Positions 1,117-24,359 of a stretch of DNA of 64,000 nt are shown piece by piece. A program made the translations under genes and the position numbers. The notes under the pieces were generated by a model. That model was not told the origin of the DNA. It did not search any database and saw nothing but the letters and a program-made list of their open reading frames with translations. Position 1 is the first letter of the stretch; each line of letters starts with the position of its first letter. The stretch lies in the sequence record MW845759.1; one strand, 5' to 3'.

Positions 1117-1125
1117 GGGATCAAA

Positions 1126-2013: not shown

Positions 2014-2022
2014 GGAGGCCAT

Positions 2023-3552: not shown

Positions 3553-3561
3553 GGAAGCATT

Positions 3562-4587: not shown

Positions 4588-4597
4588 GAGGTGATTC

Positions 4598-6727: not shown

Positions 6728-7252
6728 TTACAGGTTCGGAACGATTTTATTCCATTCGATAGGTTGCTGTTTAATCACCGTTACCACCCCACGCGTTGGC
6801 GACCATACGGTTAAGTCCGGTTGGTTACGCACGTCGAAATGGAACCAGCTAATATCGGTTTCGAGGAAGTGAATGAACGGGAACTCATTCGGGTTCTGCT
6901 GAATGTAGGCACGCACAGCCTGCGGCGTATAACTGACGAACGTCAAGTCCATCGCCCCGCCGTATTTGTGCATGCTGTCAGACGCCGCATAAAGCTCGTG
7001 AGCGCGTTCTTTATAATTGCCACCCTTTGGTTGCTCTTGATTAATAAAGAACTGTAGCGTGCGTACAGAGCGCTGTGTCATGCCTTTCGCTGGTGAGTTG
7101 ACAATGATAGCACCGAATTTGTTACGCAGCTGCTGTAACGTGAGCATCACCAACGGGTTAATGATGTACGCCGCGTTCTTCCCCCGGCGTTTGATGATAT
7201 CCGGCGGCATTAACTCTTCGAGTTTAAACTGGTTGGGGTTGGGCTGAAACAT
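6728..7252 (-). CDS. Peptidase M15-family Zn metallopeptidase (possible peptidoglycan hydrolase)
   Basis: SMHKYGGAMD (H-x6-D) and WFHFD motifs typical of LAS/M15 peptidases. Confidence 0.75.
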   Translation of the reverse strand: MFQPNPNQFKLEELMPPDIIKRRGKNAAYIINPLVMLTLQQLRNKFGAIIVNSPAKGMTQRSVRTLQFFINQEQPKGGNYKERAHELYAASDSMHKYGGAMDLTFVSYTPQAVRAYIQQNPNEFPFIHFLETDISWFHFDVRNQPDLTVWSPTRGVVTVIKQQPIEWNKIVPNL

Positions 7253-7916
7253 TTGACTCTCCTGCGGTAGGGATAGGGTAGGTCAGAAATGCGCGTTTCA
7301 CGTTTAAGTAATGTACGTGCGCCTGCTGATGGGTTCGCACCATGGTCATGTCCTGCGGCGGAATACCCACCGATGGAAACTCACGGACGAACTCATAGTT
7401 GGCGTTCATGTTAAACGTGTATGCGTTCGGTTTAAAGTAAATGCATCCTTTGTTGTTGTCGATAAACGACGTCAAGCCAAAATGCTTCACTGCCAAATAA
7501 AAGGACTGACGTGTAACCCAATTTACCCCGAGCGCTTTCATGGCGTACAGGAACATGCGGTCCGCGAAGTTCTTGTCGATAAAGGCGTTCAGTTTTCCCA
7601 CCCCGTCGGAGGGGTAGTTGCCGATAATCGGAATCTTCTGGTAAAGCAGGTCGTGCAATGCGGCCGCGGGGCCGTAGTCACCTTCCGGTTTAAACAAAAA
7701 CTGGAGCTGTGTGGGTATTGATGCTAAATCGGTTACAAACCCTTTCGGGGCAACCAAATATAAAGGCATATCGGCTTTTAACCCGGTTTCCTTTAAAATG
7801 ACCTCGAGACGTGTCGGGTCGTCCTCAAACAGACCAGCTAAAGTAAAACCGAAGGTGTAGTCTTTCGTTAAGATAAACCACTGCTTATCAAAACGGCAAT
7901 ACTCGAACTTATCCAT
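7224..7916 (-). CDS. DUF1353-domain protein
   Basis: GFVTDLASIP, AAALHDLLY and ADRMFLYAM motifs characteristic of DUF1353. Confidence 0.8.
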   Translation of the reverse strand: MDKFEYCRFDKQWFILTKDYTFGFTLAGLFEDDPTRLEVILKETGLKADMPLYLVAPKGFVTDLASIPTQLQFLFKPEGDYGPAAALHDLLYQKIPIIGNYPSDGVGKLNAFIDKNFADRMFLYAMKALGVNWVTRQSFYLAVKHFGLTSFIDNNKGCIYFKPNAYTFNMNANYEFVREFPSVGIPPQDMTMVRTHQQAHVHYLNVKRAFLTYPIPTAGESNVSAQPQPV

Positions 7917-7946: not shown

Positions 7947-7982
7947 TAAAAAAAGAACAAAAGTGTGCCCCGAAGGGCACAC
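7947..7982 (-). terminator. Intrinsic terminator closing the radical SAM/Cys-repeat cluster
   Basis: gtgtgccc-cgaa-gggcacac (UUCG loop on minus strand) with A-run on its left, directly after the stop at 7985. Confidence 0.85.
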
Positions 7983-7984
7983 GC

Positions 7985-8641
7985 TTACAGCTCAGCGACA
8001 AACTTCTCTTTCAAACCTTTGAGCGTCGTGTAATCACTCTTCTCAGCGGCTGTCCGAGCAGTCTGTTTAAAGTCGGTCATCTTTTCATGCAGCCCATTGG
8101 TACGCGCAACAATGGCTTCGTTCAACGCTTTCAAATCATCCAGCGTGAATTCGAATTTCGCATTATTGGTATCGACCCAGTAACCCGGGTCTTGCTCTGT
8201 CGAAAGGTAACGACTGATCGCCGCTAACGCTTTCTCATCGGTTTGATAAACCCGACCGTTCAGTTCGAGTGGGGCGACCACTGCTTCACTGTACGCTTGG
8301 TTTACCCACGCAATGAGTTCGGTCAGTAACGCGACACACTTCCCGTGCGTCGAGATGCGCTCCGCCTGACGCTGGGCCAAATCAATCCCCAGCACATCAC
8401 TGATAAAGGTGTGTGCGGACTTAAGCGTGAACTTAATCTCCAGCGGAGACAAGCCCTGCGCTTTCAGTTGGGAAGACAGCTCTTCGTCTTTCATCCCGTC
8501 CAGCAAACGGTAATGTGCCAGACGAGACAGAGACGGGTTCCAACGCGAGTCACTTAAATGTCCATCCACGAACTGGCCGTGACGGTCAATCAGTTTCCCG
8601 CTGTTGAGAAAGCGATCTTTTATTTGGTCATTACTAAGCAT
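7985..8641 (-). CDS. DUF4376-like protein (tail-fibre-associated/chaperone candidate)
   Basis: C-terminal NGRVYQTDEKA...YWVDTNNAKFEFTLDDLKAL..AI pattern resembles DUF4376, which is often found beside tail fibre genes. Confidence 0.6.
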   Translation of the reverse strand: MLSNDQIKDRFLNSGKLIDRHGQFVDGHLSDSRWNPSLSRLAHYRLLDGMKDEELSSQLKAQGLSPLEIKFTLKSAHTFISDVLGIDLAQRQAERISTHGKCVALLTELIAWVNQAYSEAVVAPLELNGRVYQTDEKALAAISRYLSTEQDPGYWVDTNNAKFEFTLDDLKALNEAIVARTNGLHEKMTDFKQTARTAAEKSDYTTLKGLKEKFVAEL

Positions 8642-9183
8642 TCAGTTTTCCCCAGGATGCCGACGTCTTTCAGCAGACCGTAGTCGAGGAACGAGTAGTC
8701 CTTCGCCAAGTCATACTGCCAAACGAGGTTAGACACGCGCGATTCCACCGGCGTTTCTTCAGCAGTGTTGAACACCCCGATATGATCCCACAGCTCAAAG
8801 TAGTTGCACTGGTCTTTGTTGTCGCGCACCACTTTGATTTTGTTGTTCGGGAACGATTGCGCCAAGGCAATCAGCGAGTCAACCTGCTTGTTACGTTTCG
8901 CACGGAACAGCACAGTCAACTTGCTCGGCGGGGTATCCAGCATACGCTGCTCTAAGCCGGCGTTACGCAGTTCAGCGTTCGCCAGTGAGTTATGGCCGTT
9001 CTCCACACAGTCCAGCTCAATGTGCACGTTCAACGAGTGACGTACAACCAGCTTTTTCACTGTGTCGGTGTAGTGCTCTGCTTTACACAGGATGCTTACA
9101 TCGAACAGCTTATGCTTCGTCAGAAAGGCATCCAGCAGCGTGGTATCAAGCCGAGTAAAATTGTGAATCATCAATGACTGCAT
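8620..9183 (-). CDS. Hypothetical accessory protein of the radical SAM cluster
   Basis: Likely start MQSLMIHNF at 9183 (or 9171); overlaps both neighbours, suggesting translational coupling. Confidence 0.7.
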   Translation of the reverse strand: MQSLMIHNFTRLDTTLLDAFLTKHKLFDVSILCKAEHYTDTVKKLVVRHSLNVHIELDCVENGHNSLANAELRNAGLEQRMLDTPPSKLTVLFRAKRNKQVDSLIALAQSFPNNKIKVVRDNKDQCNYFELWDHIGVFNTAEETPVESRVSNLVWQYDLAKDYSFLDYGLLKDVGILGKTECLVMTK

Positions 9184-10492
9184 TAGGCTTTTCCTGTTTT
9201 GCATGAACGTGTGGTTGAACAGCCTCTGGTTTCGCGCCAGAGAGTTTTGGAAGTTTGTTTTCCTGCGAGGCTTTAACACGGCACTCGTAGCAGTTGCACG
9301 ACAACGGTTTGAACTGGTCGCCATAGGTACCAAAACGACGTTCCCACCATTGGGCAGTTAACAGCTTAGCGGTGGTCCAGCCGCACTGGCGACGTTCCGA
9401 GTGATACTGCTTACGCGCATCCTCTTCACCGTCACCATTCTCGTACGCTGCAGCTACGCAGGACGCACAGATGTGTTTGGCCGGGCAGCCCAGACAAGCA
9501 TCGGGGTACGACTGCCACTGGGTCTGGACTTCGTTCAGGAGCTTACCGCCGTCGGTGTTGACAATCTCACGACCCACGAGCTTCGCAATTGCCTGACGGG
9601 TGGTTACGGTGGACATGAAGCGGTTACAACCGTAGATGTTACGGTCAAAGCCGAGGCAGGTCATGTGAACCGTGGTACCACAGTGCGGTTTCAGACGTTC
9701 AGGGTCGTAACGAATCTGATCGTTATGCTGTAACATCTCACGCCATTCCGGAGCCCACATGTTATCGATGTTCATACCACGAGGGGTGATGTGCCCCATC
9801 TCAGCGGTCGGGTCTAAGTGCAGACCTTTACCAATCCAGTATTCCAGCACTTCAATCATCTGGTTAGAGATGCCGAGTGCCATATCACGTGGAATGATGT
9901 CTTCGAAAATCATGTTACCGTAAATAGTGCCGCCACCAGACTGGTCAATCAGCGACTTCATGGACGCCGCGTAATGCTTCAGCGTGTCATGGGTAAAGGT
10001 CGCTTTAATCCCGAGGTCGTTGATTTTCATCGACTTCAGGTAATGATAACCTTCCAGCGCTTTCTCGTAGGAACCTTTACGAGAGGTGGTGAAGATACGG
10101 TGACGGTCGTGGGTTTCCGGCAGACCATCGATTGACACGCCGATAGACAGTTTCGGATACCAGCGCTCAATGATTGAACGGTTTAACGGCTTATCAAAAA
10201 GCGTTCCGTTCGTGGAGATGGAGAACATGTATGGGCGGTTATCACGCGCCGCTAACATCTCTGCAGTTTCGAAGGCCGCAATCAGCAGCTTCGGTTGCAG
10301 GAACGGTTCCCCACCGATAATGTCGATAATCGCGCCGCCTACATTCGGCTTGCCGCGGTCACGGTCAAAACAGGCGTGGATGAAGTCAACCACGTCATCT
10401 ACACGGTTGTTACGCGGGAACTTGCGCTCGTAGCAATAATCGCAATCGAGGTTACACGACAAGTTCGTAACAATCTGATACGTTACGTCCAT
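9146..10492 (-). CDS. Radical SAM enzyme with SPASM-type domain; predicted peptide maturase
   Basis: CNLDCDYC, GGEP, STNGT, SIDG motifs; C-terminal C-x7-C-x9-C ... CxxC-x5-C-xx-C ... C; extra CNCYEC tail. Confidence 0.9.
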   Translation of the reverse strand: MDVTYQIVTNLSCNLDCDYCYERKFPRNNRVDDVVDFIHACFDRDRGKPNVGGAIIDIIGGEPFLQPKLLIAAFETAEMLAARDNRPYMFSISTNGTLFDKPLNRSIIERWYPKLSIGVSIDGLPETHDRHRIFTTSRKGSYEKALEGYHYLKSMKINDLGIKATFTHDTLKHYAASMKSLIDQSGGGTIYGNMIFEDIIPRDMALGISNQMIEVLEYWIGKGLHLDPTAEMGHITPRGMNIDNMWAPEWREMLQHNDQIRYDPERLKPHCGTTVHMTCLGFDRNIYGCNRFMSTVTTRQAIAKLVGREIVNTDGGKLLNEVQTQWQSYPDACLGCPAKHICASCVAAAYENGDGEEDARKQYHSERRQCGWTTAKLLTAQWWERRFGTYGDQFKPLSCNCYECRVKASQENKLPKLSGAKPEAVQPHVHAKQEKPNAVIDDSQFYSA

Positions 10493-10505
10493 TACAACAT
10501 CCCCC

Positions 10506-11381
10506 TCAGGACTGTGGCAAATTTAGGTAGGTGTGCAGATACTTGTAAGCCTCTACACCGATGATTTGGGCCATGGCATTACAGCCTGAGTTGACGTAGA
10601 AGTCTACGTTCTCATTGTGCTTAATGTCACCGTTGGGTTCTACCAGTTTCAGCTGACCGCAAGCGTTACAGTTGGTGTGGTCGAAGAACTTCTCCAGACG
10701 GAACACCGTATTGATACCGTTAACGCTATTGAGATGCTGCATCTGTTCTTCAATACGCTTGTAGCCGTAAATGAAGTTCAGCACGTGGTCCTGATTGAGA
10801 GGTTTGTGCATCAGTTTATCAAACGTCAGGGTCATAGCACCCACACGTAAGTGATGCAGCGCAGCATGCAGGCGCATGGTGTCTTCAAACCAGCGCGGTT
10901 TGCTAACGTGTTCGCGGGTCAATACGCCCCACGTAACAACATTGTCCAGCGCGTGCATGACTTCAAACGCTTCGTGCGCCCCTTCTTCCACAAACGCCAT
11001 CAGACTGCGCTCACCGCCTTCAAAATGGTCGATGGAGACGATGATGCGGTCAAACGTTTTCAGGAAGTCGAGCTGCGAGAGTTTGAGTTTTCGGCCGTTG
11101 GTAAACAGCAGGTGTTTTGCGGAAGGCACTTGCTCACGTGCTTCGCCTACAAAGTCAACTAACTTCTGGTAGGCCAATAACGGTTCGCCGCCCGTCCACA
11201 GGAATTCCTCTACTTGAGGATTTTCTTTTATAATGTCCACCATTGCCTCTTTGTGTTTTGTTTTCGAAACATCACCCTTGGCCATGTGAGCTGCCCCTCC
11301 ACAGAAGGAGCAGTTCAGGTTGCACTTAGACGTCAGGGCAATGTCAATCATGGTAGCAGACGACTTAGGGGTATCGTGCAT
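10506..11381 (-). CDS. Second radical SAM enzyme (short C-terminal Cys motif)
   Basis: CNLNCSFC, TGGEPLL, FTNG, VSID motifs; C-terminal CNAC...C; likely start MHDTP at 11381. Confidence 0.88.
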   Translation of the reverse strand: MHDTPKSSATMIDIALTSKCNLNCSFCGGAAHMAKGDVSKTKHKEAMVDIIKENPQVEEFLWTGGEPLLAYQKLVDFVGEAREQVPSAKHLLFTNGRKLKLSQLDFLKTFDRIIVSIDHFEGGERSLMAFVEEGAHEAFEVMHALDNVVTWGVLTREHVSKPRWFEDTMRLHAALHHLRVGAMTLTFDKLMHKPLNQDHVLNFIYGYKRIEEQMQHLNSVNGINTVFRLEKFFDHTNCNACGQLKLVEPNGDIKHNENVDFYVNSGCNAMAQIIGVEAYKYLHTYLNLPQS

Positions 11382-12303
11382 CAGGGTTTTTGTTCCACAG
11401 ATTTTCCATGAACGCGAATAACGGGTCGGAGACACGAACGTCTTCACCCGGGACGATCAGTTTCGGGTCATGGTACGCTTTAAGAATAGCATCCAGCACC
11501 TTGTTGCGATCGTTTAAACGCAGCAGCTCATCCACCGTCACGGTCTGACGGGTAAAGGAACTGACCGCATTTTGCTCTTCGGCCGACAGCAGACCCGCTT
11601 CATTGACTTTACCGACCAAGAAGGTCAGCACACGATGTAAGTCCGCGGTAGTGTTAGGTTGCTCACCGTACTCATACTGCAACAGATAGTTGGTCCACGG
11701 CTTACGAATGCGTTTGGTAATCTCATGCGCATCGGTAATTGCGGTCCACTTCATATCACGGTGGTCCCATGTAAATTTATAGGAATACGCGAGCAGGTCG
11801 GCCAGACAGTCAATACCTAACTCTTCGTACCCTTCAACCGGGTAGTAACGCTCGAGGTTGAAATAGCCGTCATCAACGGTACCTTCTTCAACCAGCGTAT
11901 AATAGAACGGGAACGACGACGGGTATTCCCAGTTCCACTGACGCTGAATCATCGGTTTCATGCCGTGTTCTTTGAACGAGGCAAACACCATCTCCAGCGG
12001 CATGGAATAGTTCAGCACCGCATCCGTGAAGTAATACTTTTCATTGACGAGCTTACCGACGTACTCCGTCGTGCCGTCGAGGTTGTACAGAATTTTAATC
12101 CGTAACCCATCCGGCGTGGTAAACTCTTCACGCACTTCTGCATGATTTAAAATATCACGCGGACGCAGACGAGGAAATTCACCCGGGTTCATGCAAATCA
12201 AACGCAGGCGATCATTCACGTGGTCGTTTACCGCATCGGGCAGCCCAAGATGGATTGGGTAGTTAAAGTTGGTACGAAACGCCAAGTGTTCATTATTCTT
12301 CAC
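11365..12303 (-). CDS. Hypothetical accessory protein of the radical SAM cluster
   Basis: 312 aa, GTG start with RBS taaggag 10 nt after the preceding stop; aromatic-rich; no recognised motif. Confidence 0.75.
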   Translation of the reverse strand: MKNNEHLAFRTNFNYPIHLGLPDAVNDHVNDRLRLICMNPGEFPRLRPRDILNHAEVREEFTTPDGLRIKILYNLDGTTEYVGKLVNEKYYFTDAVLNYSMPLEMVFASFKEHGMKPMIQRQWNWEYPSSFPFYYTLVEEGTVDDGYFNLERYYPVEGYEELGIDCLADLLAYSYKFTWDHRDMKWTAITDAHEITKRIRKPWTNYLLQYEYGEQPNTTADLHRVLTFLVGKVNEAGLLSAEEQNAVSSFTRQTVTVDELLRLNDRNKVLDAILKAYHDPKLIVPGEDVRVSDPLFAFMENLWNKNPDARYP

Positions 12304-12313
12304 GGATAGCTCC

Positions 12314-12523
12314 TTACGATGGCCACGTTACCGCTTTAGTGCCACCTGATGCTGACCAGCTGCAGCTGCCGTTACAACGGTAGGCCCCAGCCGGAATATT
12401 GTTTAAACGGTTCGCGTTATTCACCGTCCCCCGCGTGGCGATATAGTTATTCGCAGACGCAGTCGTGATGTACCCTTCGAGACGGGCGATTTGTTGCGCA
12501 ACCTCGTTCAGTGAAACAGCCAT
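12314..12523 (-). CDS. Short paralog of the Cys-repeat proteins (2 Cys only)
   Basis: RBS taaggag; MAVSLNEV leader, NANRLNN, RCNGSCSWS. Confidence 0.8.
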   Translation of the reverse strand: MAVSLNEVAQQIARLEGYITTASANNYIATRGTVNNANRLNNIPAGAYRCNGSCSWSASGGTKAVTWPS

Positions 12524-12532
12524 AGCGACTCC

Positions 12533-12931
12533 TTACGGTCCTGAGCAACCAGAGCATCCCGTACAAGACGACGAACAGCTACCAGAGCAGCCGCCTGAAC
12601 AGCCTCCCGAACAACTTGTAGAGCACGTACCGGAACAGGTTCCCGTACAGTTACCCGAACAACCCCCAGCACAACCACCGGTGCAGTTAGACGAGCACGA
12701 ACCGCCGCACGTCCCTGAACAAGTGCCTGTACAACCGCCAGAACATGCAGAGCCGCATGACCAGCTACAAGTGCCGCCACAGTGGTAATAGTTGGCGTCT
12801 TGACCGGCTAATCGGTCGACGTTGTTTGAAGTTTTACCGCCGATGTACGCTTGAACCCCTGCTTCTGTTTTCAGTGCAGCGGACTCAATGTTGTTCATCT
12901 GGTTCTTTACTGCATTAAGTGATACAGCCAT
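12533..12931 (-). CDS. CXXX-repeat Cys-rich protein 2 (putative radical SAM substrate)
   Basis: RBS taaggag; 50-aa leader plus 82-aa core with 21 Cys in Gly/Ser/Thr-rich CXXX repeats. Confidence 0.88.
   Translation of the reverse strand: MAVSLNAVKNQMNNIESAALKTEAGVQAYIGGKTSNNVDRLAGQDANYYHCGGTCSWSCGSACSGGCTGTCSGTCGGSCSSNCTGGCAGGCSGNCTGTCSGTCSTSCSGGCSGGCSGSCSSSCTGCSGCSGP
12536..12781 (-). repeat. Coding CXXX tandem repeat (12-nt period)
   Basis: 18 CXXX units followed by CTG CSG CSGP. Confidence 0.9.
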
Positions 12932-12942
12932 GGTCGCTCTCC

Positions 12943-13329
12943 TTACATCGGACCAGAACAGGCCGAACAGCCCGTACAGGAACTAGAACAAGAGCCAGAG
13001 CACCCGTGACCACATCCGCCGGAGCACGATGAGGAACAAGCACTACCACAGCCACCCACGCAGGTGCCGGTACACGTGCCGGAGCAACTCCCGGAACACG
13101 TACCAGAACAACCACCGGAGCAGTTACCGGAACAACTCGAGCAACCATAGGAGCACCCAGACGAACATGTCCAGCTACAGCTACCGTTACAGCGAATGTC
13201 CCCGGGTGACATACCACCCAGATTGTTTGCGTTAAATGCTTTGGTTGCAACCTGATTGTCCACAGAAGGTCCTGTGGCCAAAGACAGTCTCGCAATTCGC
13301 GCATTAACGTCATTAAGTGAAACGGCCAT
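12943..13329 (-). CDS. CXXX-repeat Cys-rich protein 1 (putative radical SAM substrate)
   Basis: RBS aagga; 46-aa leader plus 82-aa core with 21 Cys. Confidence 0.88.
   Translation of the reverse strand: MAVSLNDVNARIARLSLATGPSVDNQVATKAFNANNLGGMSPGDIRCNGSCSWTCSSGCSYGCSSCSGNCSGGCSGTCSGSCSGTCTGTCVGGCGSACSSSCSGGCGHGCSGSCSSSCTGCSACSGPM
12946..13191 (-). repeat. Coding CXXX tandem repeat (12-nt period)
   Basis: CXXX units with one early CSS unit, ending CTG CSA CSGPM. Confidence 0.9.
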
Positions 13330-13383
13330 ATGCTTCCTTTAACGGGCGAACTCGCATAGAGTAACGCCCTGACGTTATAAGAG

Positions 13384-14583
13384 TTATCTGGTACCTGCAG
13401 CCGACTGGAGATCGTCGCGGGTAGTGAGGCTGTTGTTAACGTGAACAGCCGCTTGCACCACGCCACCGGTGTTTTTGTTGAGGTACTGGTCGTGTGGGTT
13501 AGCCGCGGATTTGTGTGCTGCGAGATCCGAGTTGGTGTTGGCCAACGCCTGCTCCAGAGCCGCGATGCGATTTTCGAGACCTTGGTTCGCTGAGCTCATG
13601 TTCGCAATCTGCTGTTTCAGGTTACTGATTTCCTGATTCGCTGCTGCAAGACCCTGAGTAAGGGTACCGAGCTGTTGCGAGAGCAGACCGACCTGCGTTT
13701 CCAGCACCAGAATCTCATCCATCAGCTCAGCAATCTGCAGCTGGGTTTTCTGGTAGTTCTGGTCGACGGTGTTCAGCTGGGTGTTCCACGTCCCAATCGA
13801 GCTAACCAGTGCGGCAATCTGCTGCGTTAAGTTAGTGTCGGTTGCACCCAGGGTGCCGATATCTTGCAGGACAGCGTTAATGCTACTCTGTACTGTTTGA
13901 ATCTGCGCCCGGACTTCGGCGGTGGAGTAAACGTCCAACTGGCCACGGGTAATGTTGTGCACGTTACCTTCAGCCGTACGGTGCTCTTCTAATGCTGACA
14001 GCATTTCTTGACGATACGCTTTGAGCATGTTCTGAATCTGCACCATTTCAGCAGACGCGCCGATACGGATAGCGTCGTTAAGCTTAGACAACAGCGTAAC
14101 AATATATTCAAAACCGAAGAAGTCGCCCATGTCACGAAATGCCGGTGCACCCGCAAACTCGTCAGGCACATCGCGCAGCTCAGCGAAGTTAATTGTGGGG
14201 TCATCTAAGTTCAGCGTATTGATACATTGAATGATGTTGTCCACGTTCGCGGCATACGGCCCACCAACAATCTGAGCCGACGCGGTAATGTCTGCTGGGA
14301 CTGTCGATTTAGTAATAACGATGGCTGTGGCAATCTCACGTCCACCGGCTTGTTTAGTCAGGGACGGGTGGAGCAGAATCACTTCGTAGTTGGTGCCCCG
14401 AACGAGTGGCTGATTAGGCGCATTCACCGGAGCCATTCGAAGCGTATCAACAAAGAACGGACCTGTCGGGAAAGCAAACGCTCGGTTAACAGTACCGGTA
14501 CCGAGTTTAATCGGATGCGATACGGCATTACTGAGGTTGGTTCCGAACAGGTCCAATGGGTATTGCATTGCTACCTTACTCAT
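13384..14583 (-). CDS. Putative short fibre/whisker protein with long coiled coil
   Basis: N-terminal YPLDLFG..N domain shared with the three large fibre proteins; roughly 130-residue Gln/Leu heptad region; H...NPH motifs. Confidence 0.7.
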   Translation of the reverse strand: MSKVAMQYPLDLFGTNLSNAVSHPIKLGTGTVNRAFAFPTGPFFVDTLRMAPVNAPNQPLVRGTNYEVILLHPSLTKQAGGREIATAIVITKSTVPADITASAQIVGGPYAANVDNIIQCINTLNLDDPTINFAELRDVPDEFAGAPAFRDMGDFFGFEYIVTLLSKLNDAIRIGASAEMVQIQNMLKAYRQEMLSALEEHRTAEGNVHNITRGQLDVYSTAEVRAQIQTVQSSINAVLQDIGTLGATDTNLTQQIAALVSSIGTWNTQLNTVDQNYQKTQLQIAELMDEILVLETQVGLLSQQLGTLTQGLAAANQEISNLKQQIANMSSANQGLENRIAALEQALANTNSDLAAHKSAANPHDQYLNKNTGGVVQAAVHVNNSLTTRDDLQSAAGTR

Positions 14584-14610
14584 CGGAAAAACTCCTTGTG
14601 GTGAGTAAAG

Positions 14611-14634
14611 AGTGGGGAGCCGAAACTCCCCACT
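14611..14634. terminator. Hairpin between tail fibre gene and short fibre gene (weak terminator or processing site)
   Basis: agtggggag-ccgaaa-ctccccact; only a weak U-tract on the minus strand. Confidence 0.5.
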
Positions 14635-14638
14635 TTAT

Positions 14639-17600
14639 TTACACGCTCAGGGTGGAATCATGAATCATAACATCAAGGACAGTTGCCGTTGTTGCATCAA
14701 AATAGATGTCAACGTACTTGCCGCCCGCGAATGCACGTTCTTCCGTCCAGAACATAACCGGAGCTTTCGCCCCGCCCGATTGACGCATTGCCAGAATATA
14801 GTCTTTCCCCGTAGGGACGACGATGGTCTGGCCGCCCACTGCATTAGTACCGGTCAACGTCGTTGGACTTGCAGGGTTAGGCAGTTTAACACCTGTCATC
14901 GCCGCATTGGATACCGCGAGTTTTGTCGTACCGTCTTGCACCAACTCGAATGCAATATAGCACGGCGAATTACCCGGGGCTTCCTTAACAACGAAGGCTA
15001 ACGCGTTGGGTTGATTTAACAGCGCACCTGTCAGTGTCAGGTTAGCGTTCCCCGACAGCGTCCCTTTGGAGACACCGTTAAGGTACACATCCACCGAATC
15101 ATCAACCTGCACGTTCAGCACCAACGATGAAGAGGTTGGCGTGAAACTGGTCTTTGTTGCCCATGCAGTTCCGGCGGCCAGTTTACTCTCCGGCAAGAGA
15201 GTAATTGCAGGCGAGGCTAATGGTGGACTATAGGCGCTAGCTCGAGTCCCAACATTCGGCCAAAGCTTCTCGGCATAGTTGGTCAGCAGCATCCACGGGA
15301 ACGCCGACGCTGGGAAAGTCAGGCGTTGGATGGCGTTGAAGTTACCGCCTAACTGGTTTGCTGTTTCCAGCGCCGCAGCTGTGCCGTAAGACTTCGTTAA
15401 ATCCGCACCCGGACGAGTGATGTTCCAGAACCGTGTAGCATTCTGAGACGTTGCCCCGTACCCGAACCGACAACTGCGTGCAAAGGTCGGCGCCGCCGTC
15501 ACCAAGTCCACTTCCGCGTATTTATACGTGGCTGTGTTTCTTAGCTGACTTAACGTTAACCCCTTCTTCGCCGCAATGATGGCGCGGATGTTGTCATCCC
15601 GCACACCGGTGGTTGGCAGTAACGCGTGTTCTACCGCGATATACAGCTTGTTACCGCGCCGTTCAGCATACACGTGCGCATACCACTTACTCCATGCCAG
15701 CAAGTCCGTGGTGTCCGCATCCAACGTAGTGATTAAACGGGAGGATGCTTGGCGGTAGTTCTCTTTGAGCTGAATCAGGCCGGACAGGTTAACGTGTGAC
15801 TCAATCGAGTTGCCGATAGCCAAACATAACGTCTGCTCTACATTAGCCGCAGTGTCTTCCTTCTTCAATGCTGCGAGCACCACCGCAACACCGTCGTTGT
15901 CACCGTCGTTAGAAGTGACGACCGTATTGAACACATAGTCGCCCACCAATTCGTCCGAGATAAAGCCCACGAACGTTGCGGTGTTTAACGTACATTCAAC
16001 AACGTCGTCCGCTGCCACGTATCTCCATGCCACTAACTCTGACTCGTTCGCAGGTTGCGCGACGGTAGAGTTGTTGTGGCTGAAACGGTACCAGCTATTA
16101 TAGATGTCTTCGAACGATGGGAAAGCAAACGAGTCTACCGTCCCTAAGTTTTCCATGTTCGAGTACAACGTATCCGGCGCCGCCGCACTTGGCAGGTAAC
16201 CGTGTGCGTAGCGGTTATCGGCATGACTCAACAGTGCACCAACGCGCCCCAGTCGTTTAACGCGACTGATTTTCGCATCTGTGATTGCATTGCTGGTCGT
16301 CGTGGCATAACCAATATACAGCCGGGAAGCGGTGTCCGGCAGCTGGGTTTTCGACACTAGATACTCAGCCACTCCAGATGCATTTAACTGCACGTGGAAA
16401 TAGAACGTTGCATCTTGGTAGTCCGTAGGGAATAGCGTTTTGAAATCGAACGTCGCCGCAGGGACAAGGTGGTCTTCCATCTTCGCAAAGAACGGAACCG
16501 CTTGCGTGATGTACAGAATCATCCCTTCTGCGACTTGCGGGCCAAAGAGTATTGTGGGGCGCCCGCCGGTTTCAAACGCAATACCTTTCCCGCTGTAAAC
16601 CGTCCCCCCGAGATAAACTCCGAGCATTACAAAACCAATTTTTGCGATCTCATCTGTTTCCTGAAGATACACATAGTCGATTTCATTATTAGACGGGTTA
16701 AACGAAATACGCGTACCTGTCCATGTTGTCAAATCTTGAGAGATTTTCAACAGGTAACTCAAGTCGGTGCTAGAGCTACTGGTATTCACACGACATAGCG
16801 TTCTTGTCCTTAATAACCAGCCGTCGGAACGCTTAATCAAACGCATCTGGCTCATCTCTGCCAAATCATTGAGCGTGACCGCAGACACCCTGAATTTCTC
16901 TTCCTTCCACACCTCGATACCACCGAGCATCGACAGCGAAATAATTCCATTGTCAAACGTCATCGGGATACGGTAGAAATAAGTGCTGTTATCAAACCCA
17001 CCGGCCGTCGCGTTCGGGGTCAGAATACAAGTTTGCAGCACGCAGAGGTTTTGTCCTCCGAAGTCAAAGATACTCAGCCAAGCGATTCGCAGCGTAGGAT
17101 CAATAGCCAACCAGCCCGGAATTTTCGCGTCTAAGAAGTTTTCAATAGCTGACCACTGCTCAGCACTGATAGTAACCCTCTCGTTGGTGATGGTGGTGGT
17201 GCCTGCGATATTTCGATACGCACGACTTTCTGCCTTTCTAAACGAAGCACCGTTGAGATAGGACTGACTACCGTTATAGACTTGTCCCAGGCGACAAATC
17301 GCTTCGTAGTCATTTTGCGACACGACCTCACGATCATTAGACGGCCCCCAACCCACATAATCCGGCACGCCGTAGGTAGTGTCCGTGTCGTACGCAATGC
17401 TCATACACGACCCGGTACTACGTTGACGAAGAAGCATTTTCTTGGCAGTGCCGCCCAAAGCCGCCATCCCGCGCATTCTAAGAATGTACGGCGAAGCGTA
17501 TGGTCCAAGCACATTCACACTGTTTCCAATTGAGTTGGTCCAATCGGCATTCCAGCGGGCGCTTTCAAACGCGTCAGCATTTGGTAAGCGGAAACGCACC

Positions 17601-20323
17601 AAAAAGTCTTCTGCATCTGAGTTGCCGATACCAGTGACCCTATCTCCCTGAACGAACAGGCACATGGTGTACCCGTAGAAAAGATTGTTCGAGGTTTGAT
17701 CGTATTTCCCTTTCGGGAAGGTCAATCCGGTTTCATCAACACACAACGGGAAGAAATCGTCGTCGAGCGTGGCCGTTTTCGCGGTGAGATCGATAACATA
17801 AGACACCGTCCACTGAGGATCGCTATTTCGAATACCCTGCGCCTGCAACGAAGAACGGGCATGCAAACGAACACGAATTTTATTGCCTTTTGCTGCAGCA
17901 TAAATGTTTCTGCGGCTAAAGCTGATCATATTACGCGAAGTCCATTTCGCGGCCCCTTCTGGCGTGATGTACCAAAAGTTTGTCGTGTTAGGGTCAGTGG
18001 AGTTGGCACCATACGTTGAAAAACGCGCAGCATCGCCGGCGGGGTACTTCCCAGTTAGCGGCACTTTGGACATCAGCAGGTCGGAAGTTTTCCCGACTAG
18101 ACTTTCATCCAACGTCCAAATACAGGTATAAAAGTCTTGGGGGACCAAGTACATTTTAAGCAGGCACACTTTCCCCTCGGTTAACACCAACCGGTCTTCA
18201 TTGGTGTTAAAGTACGAAGGGGTAATTGGGTCGACTGTTCCGCCATTAAGCGCTTCCAAGGTCACGCGCGAGACACGGGTGTGTTTCGCCATGTTCATGG
18301 TGCCGTCAAACATAACCAAATAGTATTTGTTATCGGTCCCTTGGAAAATACCGCATTCATCACCAATGACAGTGACCGTTTTGAACTTCACGTTCGGGGC
18401 GATAGCTTTTAGCCCCACGGGCACATACTCTACGGTGGTTGGAATCGGATTGGAAACTGCGCCTGTTTCACTCACATCCGCTGTCCAATACAACACCATC
18501 TCGGAGCCGGCATACCCGCTCGTGGCATTACGAAGCACATAGAACTTACCGTTCTCTTCCCGTCCGATGTTTGCCCGAAGTGCGGCTTCCATTTGTTGAG
18601 ACGAGCCGTCGTAACGTCCGGCAGTAGGGATAGGCAGAAAGCCACTGTCTCCGTAATACGTCCCGCTGGCCACCCACGACGGTAACAGGTTGTTGGCTTT
18701 GTCTTCTGCCCCATCGATATCCAGTTTCAACTGGTAACCGAGTTTAGAGACCGCCGCCCGTTGTGTCGTGTAGTCAATGCCTGCCGCCAGATACGCCAAG
18801 CCTGACAGGATTGGAGACGCCGTTGGGACGTTCTGCAAGTCTGCTGCAACGTGGGTGTGGACTTTCAGCGCCTTAGTGGTTAACTGGTCACGGAACACCT
18901 GCGTCACGGGCTTGTCAGCCGGTGCTGTGTTGTTGACCTTATCCAGACCGAACGACAGCGCCGTCAGGTTAATGGTTTGGGTCGAACCGAAGGCTGCGTT
19001 GTTGATTTTGAAAGTCTCATCAACGTAGTTATTCAGTTTCAACAGCAGGTCGTTCACCCCCTTCTGCGACAGCGCGTAGTTCGGTGCAATAACCTCTACA
19101 CTGTCTGTCAAACGGAACAACCCTTCTACGGTATTCGTCGCAGCCGGGGTTTGAGCCGTCATGTTCAGTGGGGACTGCGTTGAGCCATTACCGCCCATCA
19201 ATACTGTCGACGTGGACTTGAAGCTTGGTTGAGCATTCGAGTTCAGTGGGGCATAGAGGTACAGGTTAATGGACTCCGGGGTAATTAAGAAAGCGCCGTT
19301 GTAAATCGGACGGACATCTTTCGCCCCTGCAGCATTACCTTTGGACGGCACGAACAGTTCATCGTAACCTGCACGGGAGGACACCCCTACCCCGCGCTGG
19401 TTGTTGTCACTGTCTGCCGCCAGCTCAATGACGGCTTCTGCACCGGTCAACAGGATTTTGCCTGCAGTAAACCGCAGAGCAGACTTCCCGTCTTGCGTGG
19501 CGTACATCAGCTCATCGTTATTGATAGCACGGAACCGACCGAAGACCTGACCCATGGTATCTTCGAGCAGCCCATCCACAATACGCTGTGAGATTTTGTG
19601 CTCGACCATAATCGCCACTAACTCAGCAAGCGTCTTACTGAACGCTTTCACCGCGTTGGTCGCCGCATCCCCAGCCGCTAACGCCCCGATTTGCGCCGGG
19701 GTGTATTTGTGCTGATGAGGCGTTTTATGGTGCTGTAACAGTTTATCCGCATACAGCTTTTGGGCTGCACGAGACAGGGCGGTTAAGGCGGTATTAATCT
19801 CGGTGTCGAGTTGCCCGGCCTTCGCTTCAATCTTCAGACGGATACCATCAATCGATTTGGCCACCTCATCACGCTGTAGCGCTTCAGCAAGCGTAGCAGG
19901 TGGGTCAATCGGGTCAATGGTTATTGGATAACGCATCAACGATTTCCAGTCGATGTTGCGCGGTTCTGTCAGTTCCGGATTAACTAAGAAGATGCCAATG
20001 TCCGATTCAGGAACCGAATAAGACGAGCCGAGAACCTGAGCTTTATAGGTAATCTCGGTTTTGGTCAGTAGCATTATCCCGCCGAAAAGCTGAGCGTTCG
20101 CGGCGTGAGCACCCTCTGAGTAATACAACGCGAGGTAATAATCGATACCTTCGAATAACAGATTCCCCGCTGTGTCCTTAACCTCTAAGCCGTTACGAAA
20201 GAAGGGTGCCTCGAGAGGCACCACTAAATTGAAACGGTTAGGATAAGTGGACGACTTGAGGGAACCTTCCGCGATGTTATCAGGACTTTCGCCCGTCAAA
20301 TCTTCGGGATAATGTTTTCTCAT
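14639..20323 (-). CDS. Putative long tail fibre/receptor-binding protein (1894 aa)
   Basis: YPEDLTG N-terminus; AT...G..L fibre repeats; DKVNNTAPADKPV motif; distal lectin/jelly-roll-like segments (SNDGDNDG, VDDSVDVYLNG). Confidence 0.75.
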   Translation of the reverse strand: MRKHYPEDLTGESPDNIAEGSLKSSTYPNRFNLVVPLEAPFFRNGLEVKDTAGNLLFEGIDYYLALYYSEGAHAANAQLFGGIMLLTKTEITYKAQVLGSSYSVPESDIGIFLVNPELTEPRNIDWKSLMRYPITIDPIDPPATLAEALQRDEVAKSIDGIRLKIEAKAGQLDTEINTALTALSRAAQKLYADKLLQHHKTPHQHKYTPAQIGALAAGDAATNAVKAFSKTLAELVAIMVEHKISQRIVDGLLEDTMGQVFGRFRAINNDELMYATQDGKSALRFTAGKILLTGAEAVIELAADSDNNQRGVGVSSRAGYDELFVPSKGNAAGAKDVRPIYNGAFLITPESINLYLYAPLNSNAQPSFKSTSTVLMGGNGSTQSPLNMTAQTPAATNTVEGLFRLTDSVEVIAPNYALSQKGVNDLLLKLNNYVDETFKINNAAFGSTQTINLTALSFGLDKVNNTAPADKPVTQVFRDQLTTKALKVHTHVAADLQNVPTASPILSGLAYLAAGIDYTTQRAAVSKLGYQLKLDIDGAEDKANNLLPSWVASGTYYGDSGFLPIPTAGRYDGSSQQMEAALRANIGREENGKFYVLRNATSGYAGSEMVLYWTADVSETGAVSNPIPTTVEYVPVGLKAIAPNVKFKTVTVIGDECGIFQGTDNKYYLVMFDGTMNMAKHTRVSRVTLEALNGGTVDPITPSYFNTNEDRLVLTEGKVCLLKMYLVPQDFYTCIWTLDESLVGKTSDLLMSKVPLTGKYPAGDAARFSTYGANSTDPNTTNFWYITPEGAAKWTSRNMISFSRRNIYAAAKGNKIRVRLHARSSLQAQGIRNSDPQWTVSYVIDLTAKTATLDDDFFPLCVDETGLTFPKGKYDQTSNNLFYGYTMCLFVQGDRVTGIGNSDAEDFLVRFRLPNADAFESARWNADWTNSIGNSVNVLGPYASPYILRMRGMAALGGTAKKMLLRQRSTGSCMSIAYDTDTTYGVPDYVGWGPSNDREVVSQNDYEAICRLGQVYNGSQSYLNGASFRKAESRAYRNIAGTTTITNERVTISAEQWSAIENFLDAKIPGWLAIDPTLRIAWLSIFDFGGQNLCVLQTCILTPNATAGGFDNSTYFYRIPMTFDNGIISLSMLGGIEVWKEEKFRVSAVTLNDLAEMSQMRLIKRSDGWLLRTRTLCRVNTSSSSTDLSYLLKISQDLTTWTGTRISFNPSNNEIDYVYLQETDEIAKIGFVMLGVYLGGTVYSGKGIAFETGGRPTILFGPQVAEGMILYITQAVPFFAKMEDHLVPAATFDFKTLFPTDYQDATFYFHVQLNASGVAEYLVSKTQLPDTASRLYIGYATTTSNAITDAKISRVKRLGRVGALLSHADNRYAHGYLPSAAAPDTLYSNMENLGTVDSFAFPSFEDIYNSWYRFSHNNSTVAQPANESELVAWRYVAADDVVECTLNTATFVGFISDELVGDYVFNTVVTSNDGDNDGVAVVLAALKKEDTAANVEQTLCLAIGNSIESHVNLSGLIQLKENYRQASSRLITTLDADTTDLLAWSKWYAHVYAERRGNKLYIAVEHALLPTTGVRDDNIRAIIAAKKGLTLSQLRNTATYKYAEVDLVTAAPTFARSCRFGYGATSQNATRFWNITRPGADLTKSYGTAAALETANQLGGNFNAIQRLTFPASAFPWMLLTNYAEKLWPNVGTRASAYSPPLASPAITLLPESKLAAGTAWATKTSFTPTSSSLVLNVQVDDSVDVYLNGVSKGTLSGNANLTLTGALLNQPNALAFVVKEAPGNSPCYIAFELVQDGTTKLAVSNAAMTGVKLPNPASPTTLTGTNAVGGQTIVVPTGKDYILAMRQSGGAKAPVMFWTEERAFAGGKYVDIYFDATTATVLDVMIHDSTLSV

Positions 20324-20326
20324 TAC

Positions 20327-23300
20327 TTATTCCTTTTCAAGATTTAGCTGCTTAACCACGAAGTCCCAGTTACGCTGGGTCAAGTTCCATGGGTTCTGCA
20401 TTGCAATCATTGGGATTTTACCGAACTCGTACGCGTACCAATCCGCCACGTTTGTTTCGAGTGTCTTGGTCGTGTTGTCGTTGTACGTGATGGTAAACTT
20501 CGCCTTCACAAAACACGTTAACGCGCCGGCTGTTGGTTCAGTGGTTACGGTGAAGTAACCTTTAAAGTTAGCACTCGGCACATAATTGATAGTTGCCGTA
20601 GCGTTACCCACTGCACCCGCTTGGTTGGACTTCGCAACCTGTTGGCCATCTACCCACGCACTCAGTACACCCTGACCCGCAATATTCACGGATACGGTTT
20701 TGGCGTTGGTCAATAGTCCCGGTTCGATATGCGTTGCCGCATAACCCCGGCGATTAAGGTTTGCCAATCCGATGGCAGTCCCTGCGTCGGTTCCTGGGTT
20801 CAGGAAATCGTCCGCCGGTACCGGGGTGACACCAAACGTCGACTCACGTGAACCTACTTGCCACAGCCCGTGAGGAACGGTGTACGTCGCGGTATCACGC
20901 AGAATGTTCGTCGTCTCTTCGGTGAGTATCACCTGAGTGGCAATATCCGCGTCTACCATTTCCGCCCCTAAGAAGAACCCAACACGTCCGCGCTGAAGTC
21001 CGTTCTTTTTCGCCGCATACGCCGACAGCTCAGAGCCACGGATATACGACTTGATAAGGCCAGTGTGGTAGTTCAGACGCGTCAGGTATTCCGTTGGGAT
21101 GTTACACTCGAAGATAGACCCCATGATGCGGTAGCCTGTTTTGCCGGTTGAGGAATATCCCACGTACGGCCCTTCGAAGAAACGCGAAATGTCCTGACTG
21201 AACACCAACGAACAGAAGCGGTGTGCTTCAGTACGGGTAGACTCACCCACGCCACCAATCATGATATTCAAGCGATTCTCCGCCGGAATATAACGATATC
21301 GGATTGCAATCACCCGTGGCTTTTTAATTGACACGCTATCCACGTGGGTCGGGAAGGCAAAGTCAGCAGCGACCGCAACATCTTCTTCACGAGTAAACGG
21401 TACCAGATTCGTGAGGGCGATATTAACGAACGGCTGAGCAACTGGCTGCGGGTTGACCTCATTAACGAACGCGATGGACGCCGTGCCCGTCGCAGCGGAA
21501 TCAATAGCAAACAAAGACAACACTTCATGTTTACCGTTGATTGCACTGGCAACGAACTCGATAACCCCGGATTCATTAGCCATGAAAGAACCGTCGTACG
21601 TGACCCGGCGTTTTGCCTGAGGGTTCGCCATGTTCTTCCAACGGAACGGGGATTGTCCCTTCACACCTACCCACAGACGTAGCGGTGCAGCCGCTGCAGC
21701 ACCTTCTGCGACAATCAGTGTACCTTGCGTACGTAAAGTCATCCCAGCAGCATCAGAGAACAGCGCGACACTCGGCGTGGAGGTAACGGCTTTATCAGCC
21801 ACCCCGTACGGTTCAGTAATCTCCAAGCCCGGCACTTTCACATCAGCAGGACTGTAGTCGCTCGCTGTTGTATCAATACCGCCGTGAGCACGCTGGTCAG
21901 CAATATGCTCTTGCAACTCACGGAACTGACCGAAGTCAATCACTTGGTTAAACTGAATCGGCCCGCCTGAAGTCACGACTGCCGTCGCGTTAGTATCAAC
22001 ATAGCCCAGATAGAGCATCTCGGTGTTCAATGAGTCGCTCGGTACTGGCGCCCCTACCGCCTGGAATTTACCCAATGTTACGTTCCCGTAAATAAAGAAA
22101 CGCATATTCGCAGTTGGGAAGTTGGTGGCAATGGTGCCAATGCGGGTTGCGGCTGAACTGGTGTATACCGGGGTGGTGTCGTCCATGATGTCAAACGCCA
22201 TAGACGCCGGTTTGGTAGTGTCTTCGCACAACGACATAATAGCAATCGCATGCACACCCGGCAGTAACTCAATCTCCACATTCGGATCGGTCGCTGCTTC
22301 CACAACCGGGTTTTCATCTACCCAGATAGACACCTTACCTGCAGAACGCACACGGATTTTGATGATGTCATCTGTAAAGCGTAAACGCACCTTCGAGGCC
22401 AACTTAAGACCTGCTGCACCTAAGCGGTTGTTCGCCATCGAAACAGCAACCGCTTGCGGCAGTGGGTTAGTCGGCTGAGTGGTATGTACCACGCCGGCAC
22501 TCCAGTTGTTCTCGATACCGCACGCGGTGTAATACCACGTTCCGCTCGGAACCGCTGCAAGGTTAACCACACCGTCAAACGTCCCTTCTGCCGAATCTAA
22601 CGCGCGGGCTACGAAATAACGGTATGCAGTGGTAGGTGTCAGGTTCCAGCCGGATACGTTAAAGGTGACCGACTCCACCGAGGTGAACTCTAAGGTGTCT
22701 TTGTACATCACACCGAAGAAACGTTTGTTGATATCCACCAAACGGTCGTTCAACGCCTTCAGTACCGCTGGCGCAACAGCCTGACCATCTTCCACTTCGG
22801 AAAGTTGGGAGGCCACCTTAACCGTACCGTACGCCATACGCGTGGCTTGCCCGATTTGCAGCATTGACCAATCGTGCTTGTGGTCTTTGGCTACTAAGGC
22901 ATCCGTACGCGCTTTCTGCGGCGTTGAGAGCGGTTTATTCAAGTCAGCAGTGTTATCTACTGAACCCAAATTTAAATCGCTCTTATCGAGGGTAATGCCG
23001 GCACCGGACATCGGCTTGTTATTAATCAGCAGTGTCTTCGGCACCATGTCATTGAAACCGTCGTTGTACGGCTTACCGGAGGCAGGCGTTGCCGCCACCC
23101 CATCGGCCACCGCGCCCGGACCGGTTACGAGCTTTACCTTACCCGGCAACGCCTTGGTCGCTTTCGGGATATTCAGCTCAGCTTCAAGTGGCGCAGACGG
23201 TGTACCTTTCCCTTTGAACGTCATGTTCGTTGAGGAGATATTAATCTGCACGTTCTCCGGGTCACCGTTGGCGTCTTTCGACTGGTACTTCTTCACGGTA

Positions 23301-24349: not shown

Positions 24350-24359
24350 TACGAATCCT

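Follow-up and report, generated by a model that had tools for sequence, protein, structure and literature searches.

Cys-x-x-x repeat proteins encoded beside radical SAM genes in the tail-fibre region of Erwinia phage pEa_SNUABM_38: candidate cross-linked rods of phage tail fibres

Erwinia phage pEa_SNUABM_38 (MW845759.1) is a 224-kb jumbo phage of the genus Derbicusvirus. Here, we have analysed a 64,000-nucleotide stretch of its genome (the window) and focused on two adjacent genes, A and B, each encoding a helical leader followed by a run of Cys-x-x-x (CXXX) units, and on a truncated paralog, C, that lies beside them (Table 1). With moderate confidence, we favour the view that A and B, together with C, are pieces of tail-fibre rods that are cross-linked by enzymes, namely the radical S-adenosylmethionine (SAM) cassette encoded next to them. 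The CXXX-repeat family has been named before and is uncharacterised. What is new here is its consistent tail-fibre setting, which is undescribed in the searchable literature.

The cores of A and B were the subject of an earlier, sequence-only note on this DNA (the original prediction), which counted 82 residues and 21 Cys in each, pointed out that they share a C(N/G)G(S/T)CSW start and a CSGP-type end, and stated that their common tail is written in different synonymous codons. A direct count gives the same result on every point. The first Cys is residue 47 in A and residue 51 in B, and both cores run from C(N/G)G(S/T)CSW to ...CSGSCSSSCTGCS(A/G)CSGP, after which A adds one Met. In the final 22 positions of their alignment, A and B agree in 19 amino acids and in only 7 of the 22 codons, and 43 of the 66 bases match. 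The cores are composed almost wholly of Cys, Ser, Gly and Thr (26% Cys), and in their four-residue units X1 is mainly Ser, X2 is mainly Gly and X3 is Ser, Thr or Gly. The spacing of the Cys residues is 4444 3 4444444444444 33 in A and eighteen 4s followed by 33 in B, with one internal CxxC in A and none in B. The equal length arises because two differences compensate for each other, A having both the internal CxxC and the extra C-terminal Met and B having neither, so that the shared 82-residue core length is partly a coincidence. A, B and C all begin with hydrophilic helices, which lack the RR motif of a twin-arginine signal, and a scan of the window with a hidden Markov model (HMM) of the leader matched A, B and C alone. 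The enzymes, paralog C and the tail-fibre setting, to which we come below, were absent from the original prediction.

That A, B and C are real genes, coding in the Cys frame, came from comparison with related phages. We assembled orthologs from 30 loci of SPN3US-like jumbo phages, made up of the window, 11 phages in GenBank that represent five genera, and 18 contigs from IMG/VR, some of them duplicates of the GenBank phages. Over bases 10400-14700 of the window, identity is 96% with Derbicus and EarlPhillipIV, 80% with Phobos and 76% with Cronobacter phage CR5, and every gene in this region is intact. The stretch encoding A and B carries no annotation in MW845759. The counterparts of window positions 12524-13383 in four relatives (L002 5109-5914, L003 5129-5950, L004 5495-5707 and L005 3570-3905) carry annotated open reading frames that are off the Cys frame. 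Derbicus gp161 and gp162 and SPN3US gp166 (out of frame with B) are called in another frame, and Phobos gp167 and gp168 and CR5_157 are called on the opposite strand. Among the relatives compared, Stratton gp185 is the sole annotated open reading frame that lies exactly in the Cys frame. One could argue from these records that GC-rich DNA of low complexity has given rise to spurious Cys frames and that the annotated alternative-frame or opposite-strand reading frames of Derbicus, Phobos, CR5 and SPN3US are the true genes. We give this argument next to no credence, and it is already refuted by the pattern of substitution. Between SNUABM_38 and Phobos, the A-C stretch has ∼25% base differences and zero indels, and the ratio of nonsynonymous to synonymous differences (pN/pS) in the Cys frame is 0.17 for A, 0.10 for B and 0.12-0.15 for C, compared with 1.2-5.8 in the two other frames, at a pS of ∼0.7-0.8 that places synonymous sites near saturation. 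Substitutions are thus overwhelmingly synonymous in the Cys frame alone. Moreover, all three genes are preceded by GGAG-type ribosome-binding sites, with gaps of 9-11 nucleotides joining A, B, C and the next gene: A has a GGA-rich site upstream, and B starts 11 nucleotides past the stop of A behind a GGAG site. The Cys frames also give significant family matches, and these reading frames are kept in the 30 loci.

The substitution data bear on the cores as well. A comparison of substitution rates in the cores had been proposed as a check, and it shows that the cores are the more constrained part of the proteins, with a pN of 0.06-0.07 as compared with 0.10-0.20 in the leaders. The misannotation is consistent, with A and B missing in pEa_SNUABM_38 and called in the wrong frame or on the wrong strand in relatives; therefore, proteomic and structural studies of these model jumbo phages never looked for them. 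In SPN3US and SPAsTU (L005 about 3905-4140; L016 about 2905-3140), C is also present and unannotated, with an apparent non-ATG start. This form of C has 4 Cys and ends in ...GAGNR, while the Derbicusvirus and Wellingtonvirus form has 2 Cys.

By their profile matches, A and B can be placed in the CXXX-repeat radical SAM target family (TIGR04114/PF27846; phrog_6085), previously named but uncharacterised. Against the NCBIfam model TIGR04114 ('Cys-rich repeat-containing protein', tSAM_targ_Cxxx), with its curated cut-off of 20 bits, B scores 23.8 bits and A scores 20.0 bits, exactly at the threshold; C gave no match to this model. All three proteins match phrog_6085, a family of unknown function (E = 4.5e-43 for A, 5e-40 for B and 4e-24 for C). 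When 5.8 billion proteins were searched, 181 homologs emerged. The majority carry PF27846 (tSAM_targ_Cxxx_rpt), and a few bear the name 'Cys-Xaa-Xaa-Xaa repeat radical SAM target protein'. The assignment to PF27846 is made via these homologs, the model being absent from the Pfam version scanned, and hence A, B, C and the distant homologs have no Pfam match.

How the CXXX run may be used is suggested by its occurrence in phages that are unrelated to SPN3US. A junction motif, ..L.G.....Y.C.G.CSW.C, followed by a CXXX run is common to the jumbo-phage proteins and to the proteins of unrelated phages, and in a number of the latter it forms part of a tail-fibre protein. P0191 (432 residues) joins a tail-fibre domain (phrog_5073, 6.5e-52) and collagen repeats (2e-21) to the junction motif and 15 Cys, and P0175 (429 residues) has an N-terminal domain of the tail-fibre/tail-spike type and 25 Cys. 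P0171 and P0237 have fibre domains and 21 Cys. In all four, the module is at the C-terminus. P0012 and P0029 are further tail-fibre proteins in which the homologous module is a domain. Elsewhere, the CXXX protein is encoded beside tail genes. In a podophage with a P22-type portal (L008), an 843-residue tail fibre (phrog_5073, 7e-86) is followed by a CXXX protein and a long radical SAM protein, and a second P22-portal podophage (L019) has a similar order with a collagen-like fibre after the radical SAM gene. In a T7-like phage (L010), the order is a protein with the T7 tail-fibre N-terminal domain, a small tail protein, the CXXX protein and a short radical SAM protein, and in a lambda-like siphophage (L020) it is gpM, gpL, gpK, gpI, gpJ, the CXXX protein and a short radical SAM protein. 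The longest runs are found in P0149-P0157, P0164 and P0173, proteins of 1460-1800 residues with uninterrupted C-terminal runs of 94-163 Cys-x-x-x units. P0149 (L042 6001-11358; 1785 residues, 163 units) is encoded on a phage-like contig with a T4-type portal and a 1464-residue Listeria-Bacteroides-repeat protein. On the same contig, a radical SAM gene is interrupted by Hint/intein domains.

In every phage context that we examined, dedicated radical SAM genes accompany the CXXX protein. Downstream of both P0191 and P0175 come an accessory protein of ∼235 residues, a short radical SAM protein and a long one. These accessory proteins are detected by an HMM of the 312-residue family encoded downstream of C (E = 1e-8 and 5e-7), and the long radical SAM proteins are 32-35% identical to rSAM1, the long enzyme of our locus. 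As judged from gene order and homology, the phage cassette consists of a CXXX-ended fibre protein, an accessory protein, a short radical SAM protein and a long SPASM radical SAM protein, and in SPN3US-like phages the fibre part is split off as three small paralogs. Bacteria of the Bacteroidales have their own version of the system, in which (L018 6001-9906) a 102-residue CXXX peptide with a Tat (twin-arginine translocation) signal is encoded with a radical SAM protein, proteins of 342 and 89 residues, TatA and TatC. The presence of its own TatA and TatC suggests that the modified peptide is exported in a folded state.

The enzymes of the window belong to two lineages. rSAM1 has the CX3CX2C motif at residues 13/17/20 and C-terminal Cys at 271, 279, 289, 333, 336, 342, 345 and 370 in a SPASM-like arrangement. 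It matches the PapB family with 113 bits (E about 1e-32), TIGR04115, the CXXX-repeat maturase, with 111.5 bits (E = 6e-32, over 340 of the 359 profile positions), and TIGR03906 (QhpD) with 55 bits, and is best described from these scores as a homolog, not an equivalog, of TIGR04115. To the bacterial maturase, it is 23-25% identical (E 1e-13 to 5e-27), with 23% for the enzyme of L018. Its closest structure in the PDB, and its sole sequence relative there, is CteB (5WGG/5WHY; E = 8e-8). As the alignment begins at CteB residue 106, the N-terminal region of CteB, which holds the RiPP recognition element (RRE; RiPP, ribosomally synthesised and post-translationally modified peptide), has no counterpart in rSAM1. 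In SPFM2, the rSAM1 ortholog is annotated as AlbA. rSAM2 has CX3CX2C at residues 20/24/27 and three C-terminal Cys, and belongs to a separate, short lineage that it shares with the ∼270-residue radical SAM proteins found beside CXXX proteins in T7-like and lambda-like phages. We also observed that two IMG/VR contigs (L035 1892-2803; L036 1893-2804) have an extra short radical SAM gene (303 residues) between A and B besides the downstream copy, which hints that short radical SAM proteins may pair with particular CXXX substrates.

The third component is the 312-residue accessory protein. The HMM of its family detects proteins of 234, 239 and 289 residues at the same position in L039, L041 and L011. 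Its AlphaFold2 model has a mean predicted local distance difference test score (pLDDT) of 83.9, and a fold search with it found no PDB match better than E = 0.1, while the sole match in BFVD was its own ortholog from Asesino. On the basis of this model, the protein appears to be an orphan fold restricted to phage CXXX cassettes.

A leader and a Cys-rich core encoded beside a SPASM-type radical SAM protein is the layout of a RiPP gene cluster, as in the clusters of ranthipeptides and sactipeptides. It could therefore be argued that A and B are the precursors of a diffusible RiPP (a bacteriocin, a signal or an anti-defence peptide), whose leader is removed and whose core is released at lysis without ever entering the virion. 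That the family members in bacteria are small peptides exported by Tat, and that a distant jumbo-like contig (L011) has its cassette away from recognisable tail genes, would fit such a role. We nevertheless regard it as quite unlikely. Pfam, NCBIfam and PHROG scans matched no peptidase, transporter or exporter family in the operon, and Pfam and NCBIfam scans matched no Tat genes, so neither a protease nor an exporter was detected there. The part of CteB that contains its RRE has no equivalent in rSAM1. The motif that resembles a leader is internal and C-terminal in genuine tail-fibre proteins, and therefore it is not a removable leader there. The module lies inside the tail-fibre gene sets of four unrelated phage types, and the SPN3US-like phages have retained three distinct paralogs across five genera.

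The composition of the cores invites another explanation, that the Cys runs are held by metal and not by covalent bonds, either as metal-thiolate or iron-sulfur rods or as carriers of sulfur or iron-sulfur for the radical SAM proteins. Their Cys content, the regular four-residue spacing and the small side chains between the Cys residues would suit metal binding, the covalent chemistry is drawn by analogy, and metal-stabilised fibre domains occur in other phages, such as the iron-binding His repeats of the T4 gp37 needle. This explanation seems to us unlikely, since in NCBIfam TIGR04114 and TIGR04115 describe the target of a radical SAM enzyme and the corresponding maturase, thioethers are what the nearest characterised enzymes make, and radical SAM genes dedicated to the CXXX protein recur from one phage context to the next. 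Furthermore, no metallothionein or ferredoxin family was matched in the Pfam and NCBIfam scans. A covalent thioether ladder is, by analogy, the most plausible chemistry, because the operon has two radical SAM genes and rSAM1 is closest to PapB, CteB and the CXXX-repeat maturase family.

Within the window, A, B and C sit in a fibre and baseplate module, downstream of a 399-residue virion protein and three giant paralogs and upstream of a tail assembly chaperone, which family searches located at 7224-7916. The giant genes (1894, 1340 and 1209 residues; 14639-27989, minus strand) are distant paralogs with 23-35% identity over segments, in agreement with the paralog family that has been described around SPN3US gp168 (PMC5105663). 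SPN3US gp168 is a tail protein that has been likened to phiKZ gp131 at the baseplate periphery (PMC5105663). The genes downstream of C overlap or are 10-13 nucleotides apart, and the fibre genes through the terminator-like hairpin form one unit of overlapping or closely spaced genes. A scan for sigma-70 promoters returned fewer sites than shuffled sequences did, and its result was not used. The gene order is common to the five genera and the IMG/VR contigs; in SPN3US, the best-studied relative, it reads gp168, gp167, A, B, C, gp165, gp164 and gp163. Elsewhere in the window (100-5485, plus strand), we noted five tandem paralogous genes (338, 295, 509, 341 and 295 residues; mutual identity 25-50%), whose counterparts by position carry the annotation of virion structural proteins in Stratton and Kwan.

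Table 1. Features of the CXXX locus in the window
Feature	Position	Strand	Remarks
1894-aa fibre/baseplate-periphery protein	14639..20323	-	position of SPN3US gp168; paralog of two large upstream genes
399-aa coiled-coil virion structural protein	13384..14583	-	directly upstream of A; phrog_2163 E = 2.8e-100; SPN3US gp167 ortholog
CXXX-repeat protein A	12943..13329	-	128 aa; 46-aa helical leader/junction, then 82-aa core with 21 Cys
CXXX-repeat protein B	12533..12931	-	132 aa; 50-aa leader, then 82-aa core with 21 Cys
Truncated paralog C	12314..12523	-	69 aa; leader and CxGxCSW head as in A and B; core 20 aa with 2 Cys
312-aa accessory protein (phrog_8030)	11365..12303	-	third component of phage CXXX cassettes, conserved
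rSAM2, short radical SAM, 291 aa as annotated	10506..11381	-	Pfam Radical_SAM E = 6.7e-11
rSAM1, long SPASM-type radical SAM, 448 aa	9146..10492	-	PapB and TIGR04115 family matches
187-aa protein (phrog_7988), function unknown	8620..9183	-	overlaps both neighbouring genes; weak homolog at same position in L011
218-aa DUF4376 protein, last gene of unit	7985..8641	-	Pfam DUF4376 E = 3.5e-11; phrog_8169; weak tail-protein match
Terminator-like hairpin	7963..7982	-	8 pairs, 6 G-C, then T run; directly after the DUF4376 gene
aa, amino acids.

The virion proteome of SPN3US lists gp160 and gp167-171 and none of gp161-166 (PMC5694885, supplementary file 3). As gp161-166 are off this list, the radical SAM proteins and gp165 behave as non-structural factors. 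For A and B, the same list is uninformative, because A is unannotated in SPN3US, gp166 is in the wrong frame and neither protein was in the database that was searched. It may still be asked if A, B and C are themselves assembly factors (a scaffold, a ruler or a chaperone for the large fibre proteins) that are modified by the radical SAM proteins and discarded by the time the virion is complete. The C-terminal domains of some fibres, the chaperone domains of the endosialidase type, are released after folding. That the operon has a tail assembly chaperone and a DUF4376 protein, and that gp161-166 are off the list, could be read in the same way. We consider this possibility quite unlikely, since the missing proteomic evidence carries no weight for proteins that could not have been found, and an array of 100-163 units joined to a fibre-like protein has the look of a structural element, not of a catalytic or short-lived one.

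The original prediction took the identical lengths of the two cores as a sign of a structural ruler or of a defined ring or ladder (thioether or disulfide ladder, metal-thiolate solenoid), reasoning that tandem repeats normally drift in copy number, and called for a tabulation of orthologs. Our analysis bears it out in part, with a fixed number of Cys slots in this lineage, no fixed residue length and a plausible thioether ladder. The tabulation shows that the number of Cys slots is what is held, while residue length varies. All 20 distinct A orthologs have 21 Cys, with a core of 78-84 residues. Among the 21 distinct B orthologs, the core is 80-84 or 92 residues long and 4 sequences have 21 Cys, 14 have 20 and 3 have 23. 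In the 14 with 20 Cys, Ala replaces Cys in one slot, at the identical position every time, and if this slot is counted the number is 21 in 18 of the 21. The 22 distinct C orthologs, with C present in all related phages, have 2 or 4 Cys and a core of 20-21 residues. Cores of 78 and 82 residues occur within one genome. Since A always has 21 Cys at 78-84 residues, it is the slot number and not the residue length that is conserved. The CxGxCSW head does not vary. The three paralogs fall into separate orthologous groups, each with its own leader signature, that have been kept across five genera with a leader identity between genera of about 42-46% for A and 42-56% for B. The constancy within this lineage does not extend to the wider family, in which the number of consecutive units is about 10 to 163. 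A clade of ∼210-residue proteins from T7-like and lambda-like phages (33-42% identity) has 18 Cys throughout, and in L011, where the cassette is complete, the counts are 15 and 16 Cys.

The premise of drift is inapplicable here at the DNA level. In either core, the longest exact DNA repeat is 9-10 nucleotides and no 12-mer is repeated, the same as in synonymous-codon shuffles, and Tandem Repeats Finder detected short arrays alone, of 65-81% identity. Without substrates for slippage, part of the stability in number is explained without any ruler. On the other hand, single-residue indels (CxxC versus CxxxC) have never added or removed a Cys in A, which points to selection on slot number. Taken over the aligned orthologs, the data point to selection on how many Cys slots there are (21 in this lineage) and not on how many residues. 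We also considered selection for codon scrambling and rejected it, as the DNA repeat content equals that of synonymous shuffles and indicates nothing beyond ordinary synonymous drift. Concerted evolution of the A and B tails is ambiguous: the longest common strings average 10.9 residues within a genome and 7.9 between genera. Much of the similarity between the tails is an ancestral motif, because Stratton A shares 19 residues with the B tail of SNUABM_38.

To account for these observations, we propose the following model of the cross-linked fibre rod. A, B and C are stand-alone versions of the C-terminal module of tail fibres, a short helical junction followed by a CXXX run, and would be translated from a late tail-fibre operon. 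In the cytoplasm, A and B may be modified by the cassette encoded downstream (the accessory protein, the short radical SAM protein and the long one), and their Cys thiols would be converted to thioether cross-links, on the model of PapB, CteB and QhpD. What results would be a thin, stiff rod held by covalent staples. It would be stable to reduction and proteolysis, with a length set by the number of units; the runs of up to 163 units are as expected of a modular rod of tunable length. The stapled rod would then join the fibre apparatus of the virion. We speculate that the homologous helical leaders bring A, B and C together, A and B lying in register and C serving as a cap or an initiator, and such in-register assembly would explain the shared slot number.

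We would like to point out that several observations weigh against this model. A conserved acceptor residue like the Asp in the substrates of PapB is absent from the repeat units. The scores of rSAM1 (111-113 bits) are far below the equivalog cut-offs of 340-350 bits (350 for TIGR04115). The cassette of L011 is not beside recognisable tail genes, and the count of 21 is not absolute, since the Wellingtonvirus type of B (3 sequences) has 23 Cys. An AlphaFold2 monomer of B, built from a 16-sequence alignment, was uninformative, with a mean pLDDT of 47.6 and the N-terminal helices alone predicted. The searchable literature reports CXXX-repeat chemistry for no system. Finally, we infer the presence of A, B and C in virions from sequence.

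In its broadest form, the proposal is that phage radical SAM proteins cross-link a virion structural protein, and that the CXXX run is a stapled fibre rod of about 10 to 163 units common to jumbo myophages, T7-like and P22-like podophages and lambda-like siphophages, represented in SPN3US-like phages by three co-evolving subunits of which A and B are kept at 21 slots by in-register assembly. We put this forward tentatively, as a possibility that we judge to be somewhat short of probable. If true, radical SAM proteins would be responsible for the post-translational modification of a phage structural protein, something that is undescribed in the searchable literature; we found nothing there that deals with CXXX repeats or with radical SAM in the tails of phages, and a 2026 review of jumbo phages makes no mention of radical SAM. 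It would also provide a function and a tractable model for the CXXX-repeat radical SAM family, so far named without a known chemistry or role, and would explain why there are two radical SAM genes among the tail genes of SPN3US-like phages.

The closest known system is the CXXX-repeat peptide and maturase pair (TIGR04114 and TIGR04115; PF27846), which is defined bioinformatically and typified by the Bacteroidales. Both versions have Ser/Gly/Thr-rich tandems of Cys-x-x-x and a nearby SPASM-type radical SAM protein, that of the phage being homologous to the maturase. The bacterial members, however, are twin-arginine peptides of ∼100 residues encoded beside TatA and TatC, whereas the phage proteins A, B and C have no signal peptide, and the bacterial 342-residue partner has no detectable similarity to the phage accessory protein. 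The phage version further differs in its tail-fibre-type junction motif, in its occurrence as three paralogs or as fibre fusions, and in having a second, short radical SAM protein and a phage-specific accessory protein.

Among characterised enzymes, the best-scoring families for rSAM1 are those of the ranthipeptides (freyrasin/PapB and SCIFF/CteB). PapB substrates likewise have repeated short Cys units, each of which is closed into a small thioether ring (PMC9413430). PapB requires an Asp or Glu acceptor four residues past the Cys, while the phage units have no acidic residue, and ranthipeptide substrates are short secreted peptides, in contrast to the phage proteins of 128-132 residues or the fibre domains. 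Sactipeptides (such as subtilosin/AlbA and thuricin CD) resemble the phage system in having Cys at i and i+4 and cross-linking by a SPASM/twitch radical SAM protein. Their 3-4 Cys are linked to a Cys-free acceptor half to form a hairpin, whereas the phage proteins have 21 consecutive Cys units and no acceptor half.

A precedent for modifying a protein that stays in a larger assembly is QhpD/QhpC, in which a SPASM-type radical SAM protein puts Cys thioethers into the small subunit of quinohemoprotein amine dehydrogenase. QhpC differs in that its cross-links are few and are made to Asp or Glu, its sequence is non-repetitive, and it has no known link to viruses. On the structural side, the best comparison is with the collagen-like (Gly-X-Y) repeats of fibres, which are likewise short-period repeats whose segment length scales with the number of units. 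The two co-occur, both being present in P0191, and collagen-like fibres adjoin the CXXX gene in L008 and L019. Collagen-like repeats have a period of 3 and an invariant Gly, while the CXXX repeat has a period of 4, an invariant Cys and its own dedicated enzymes.

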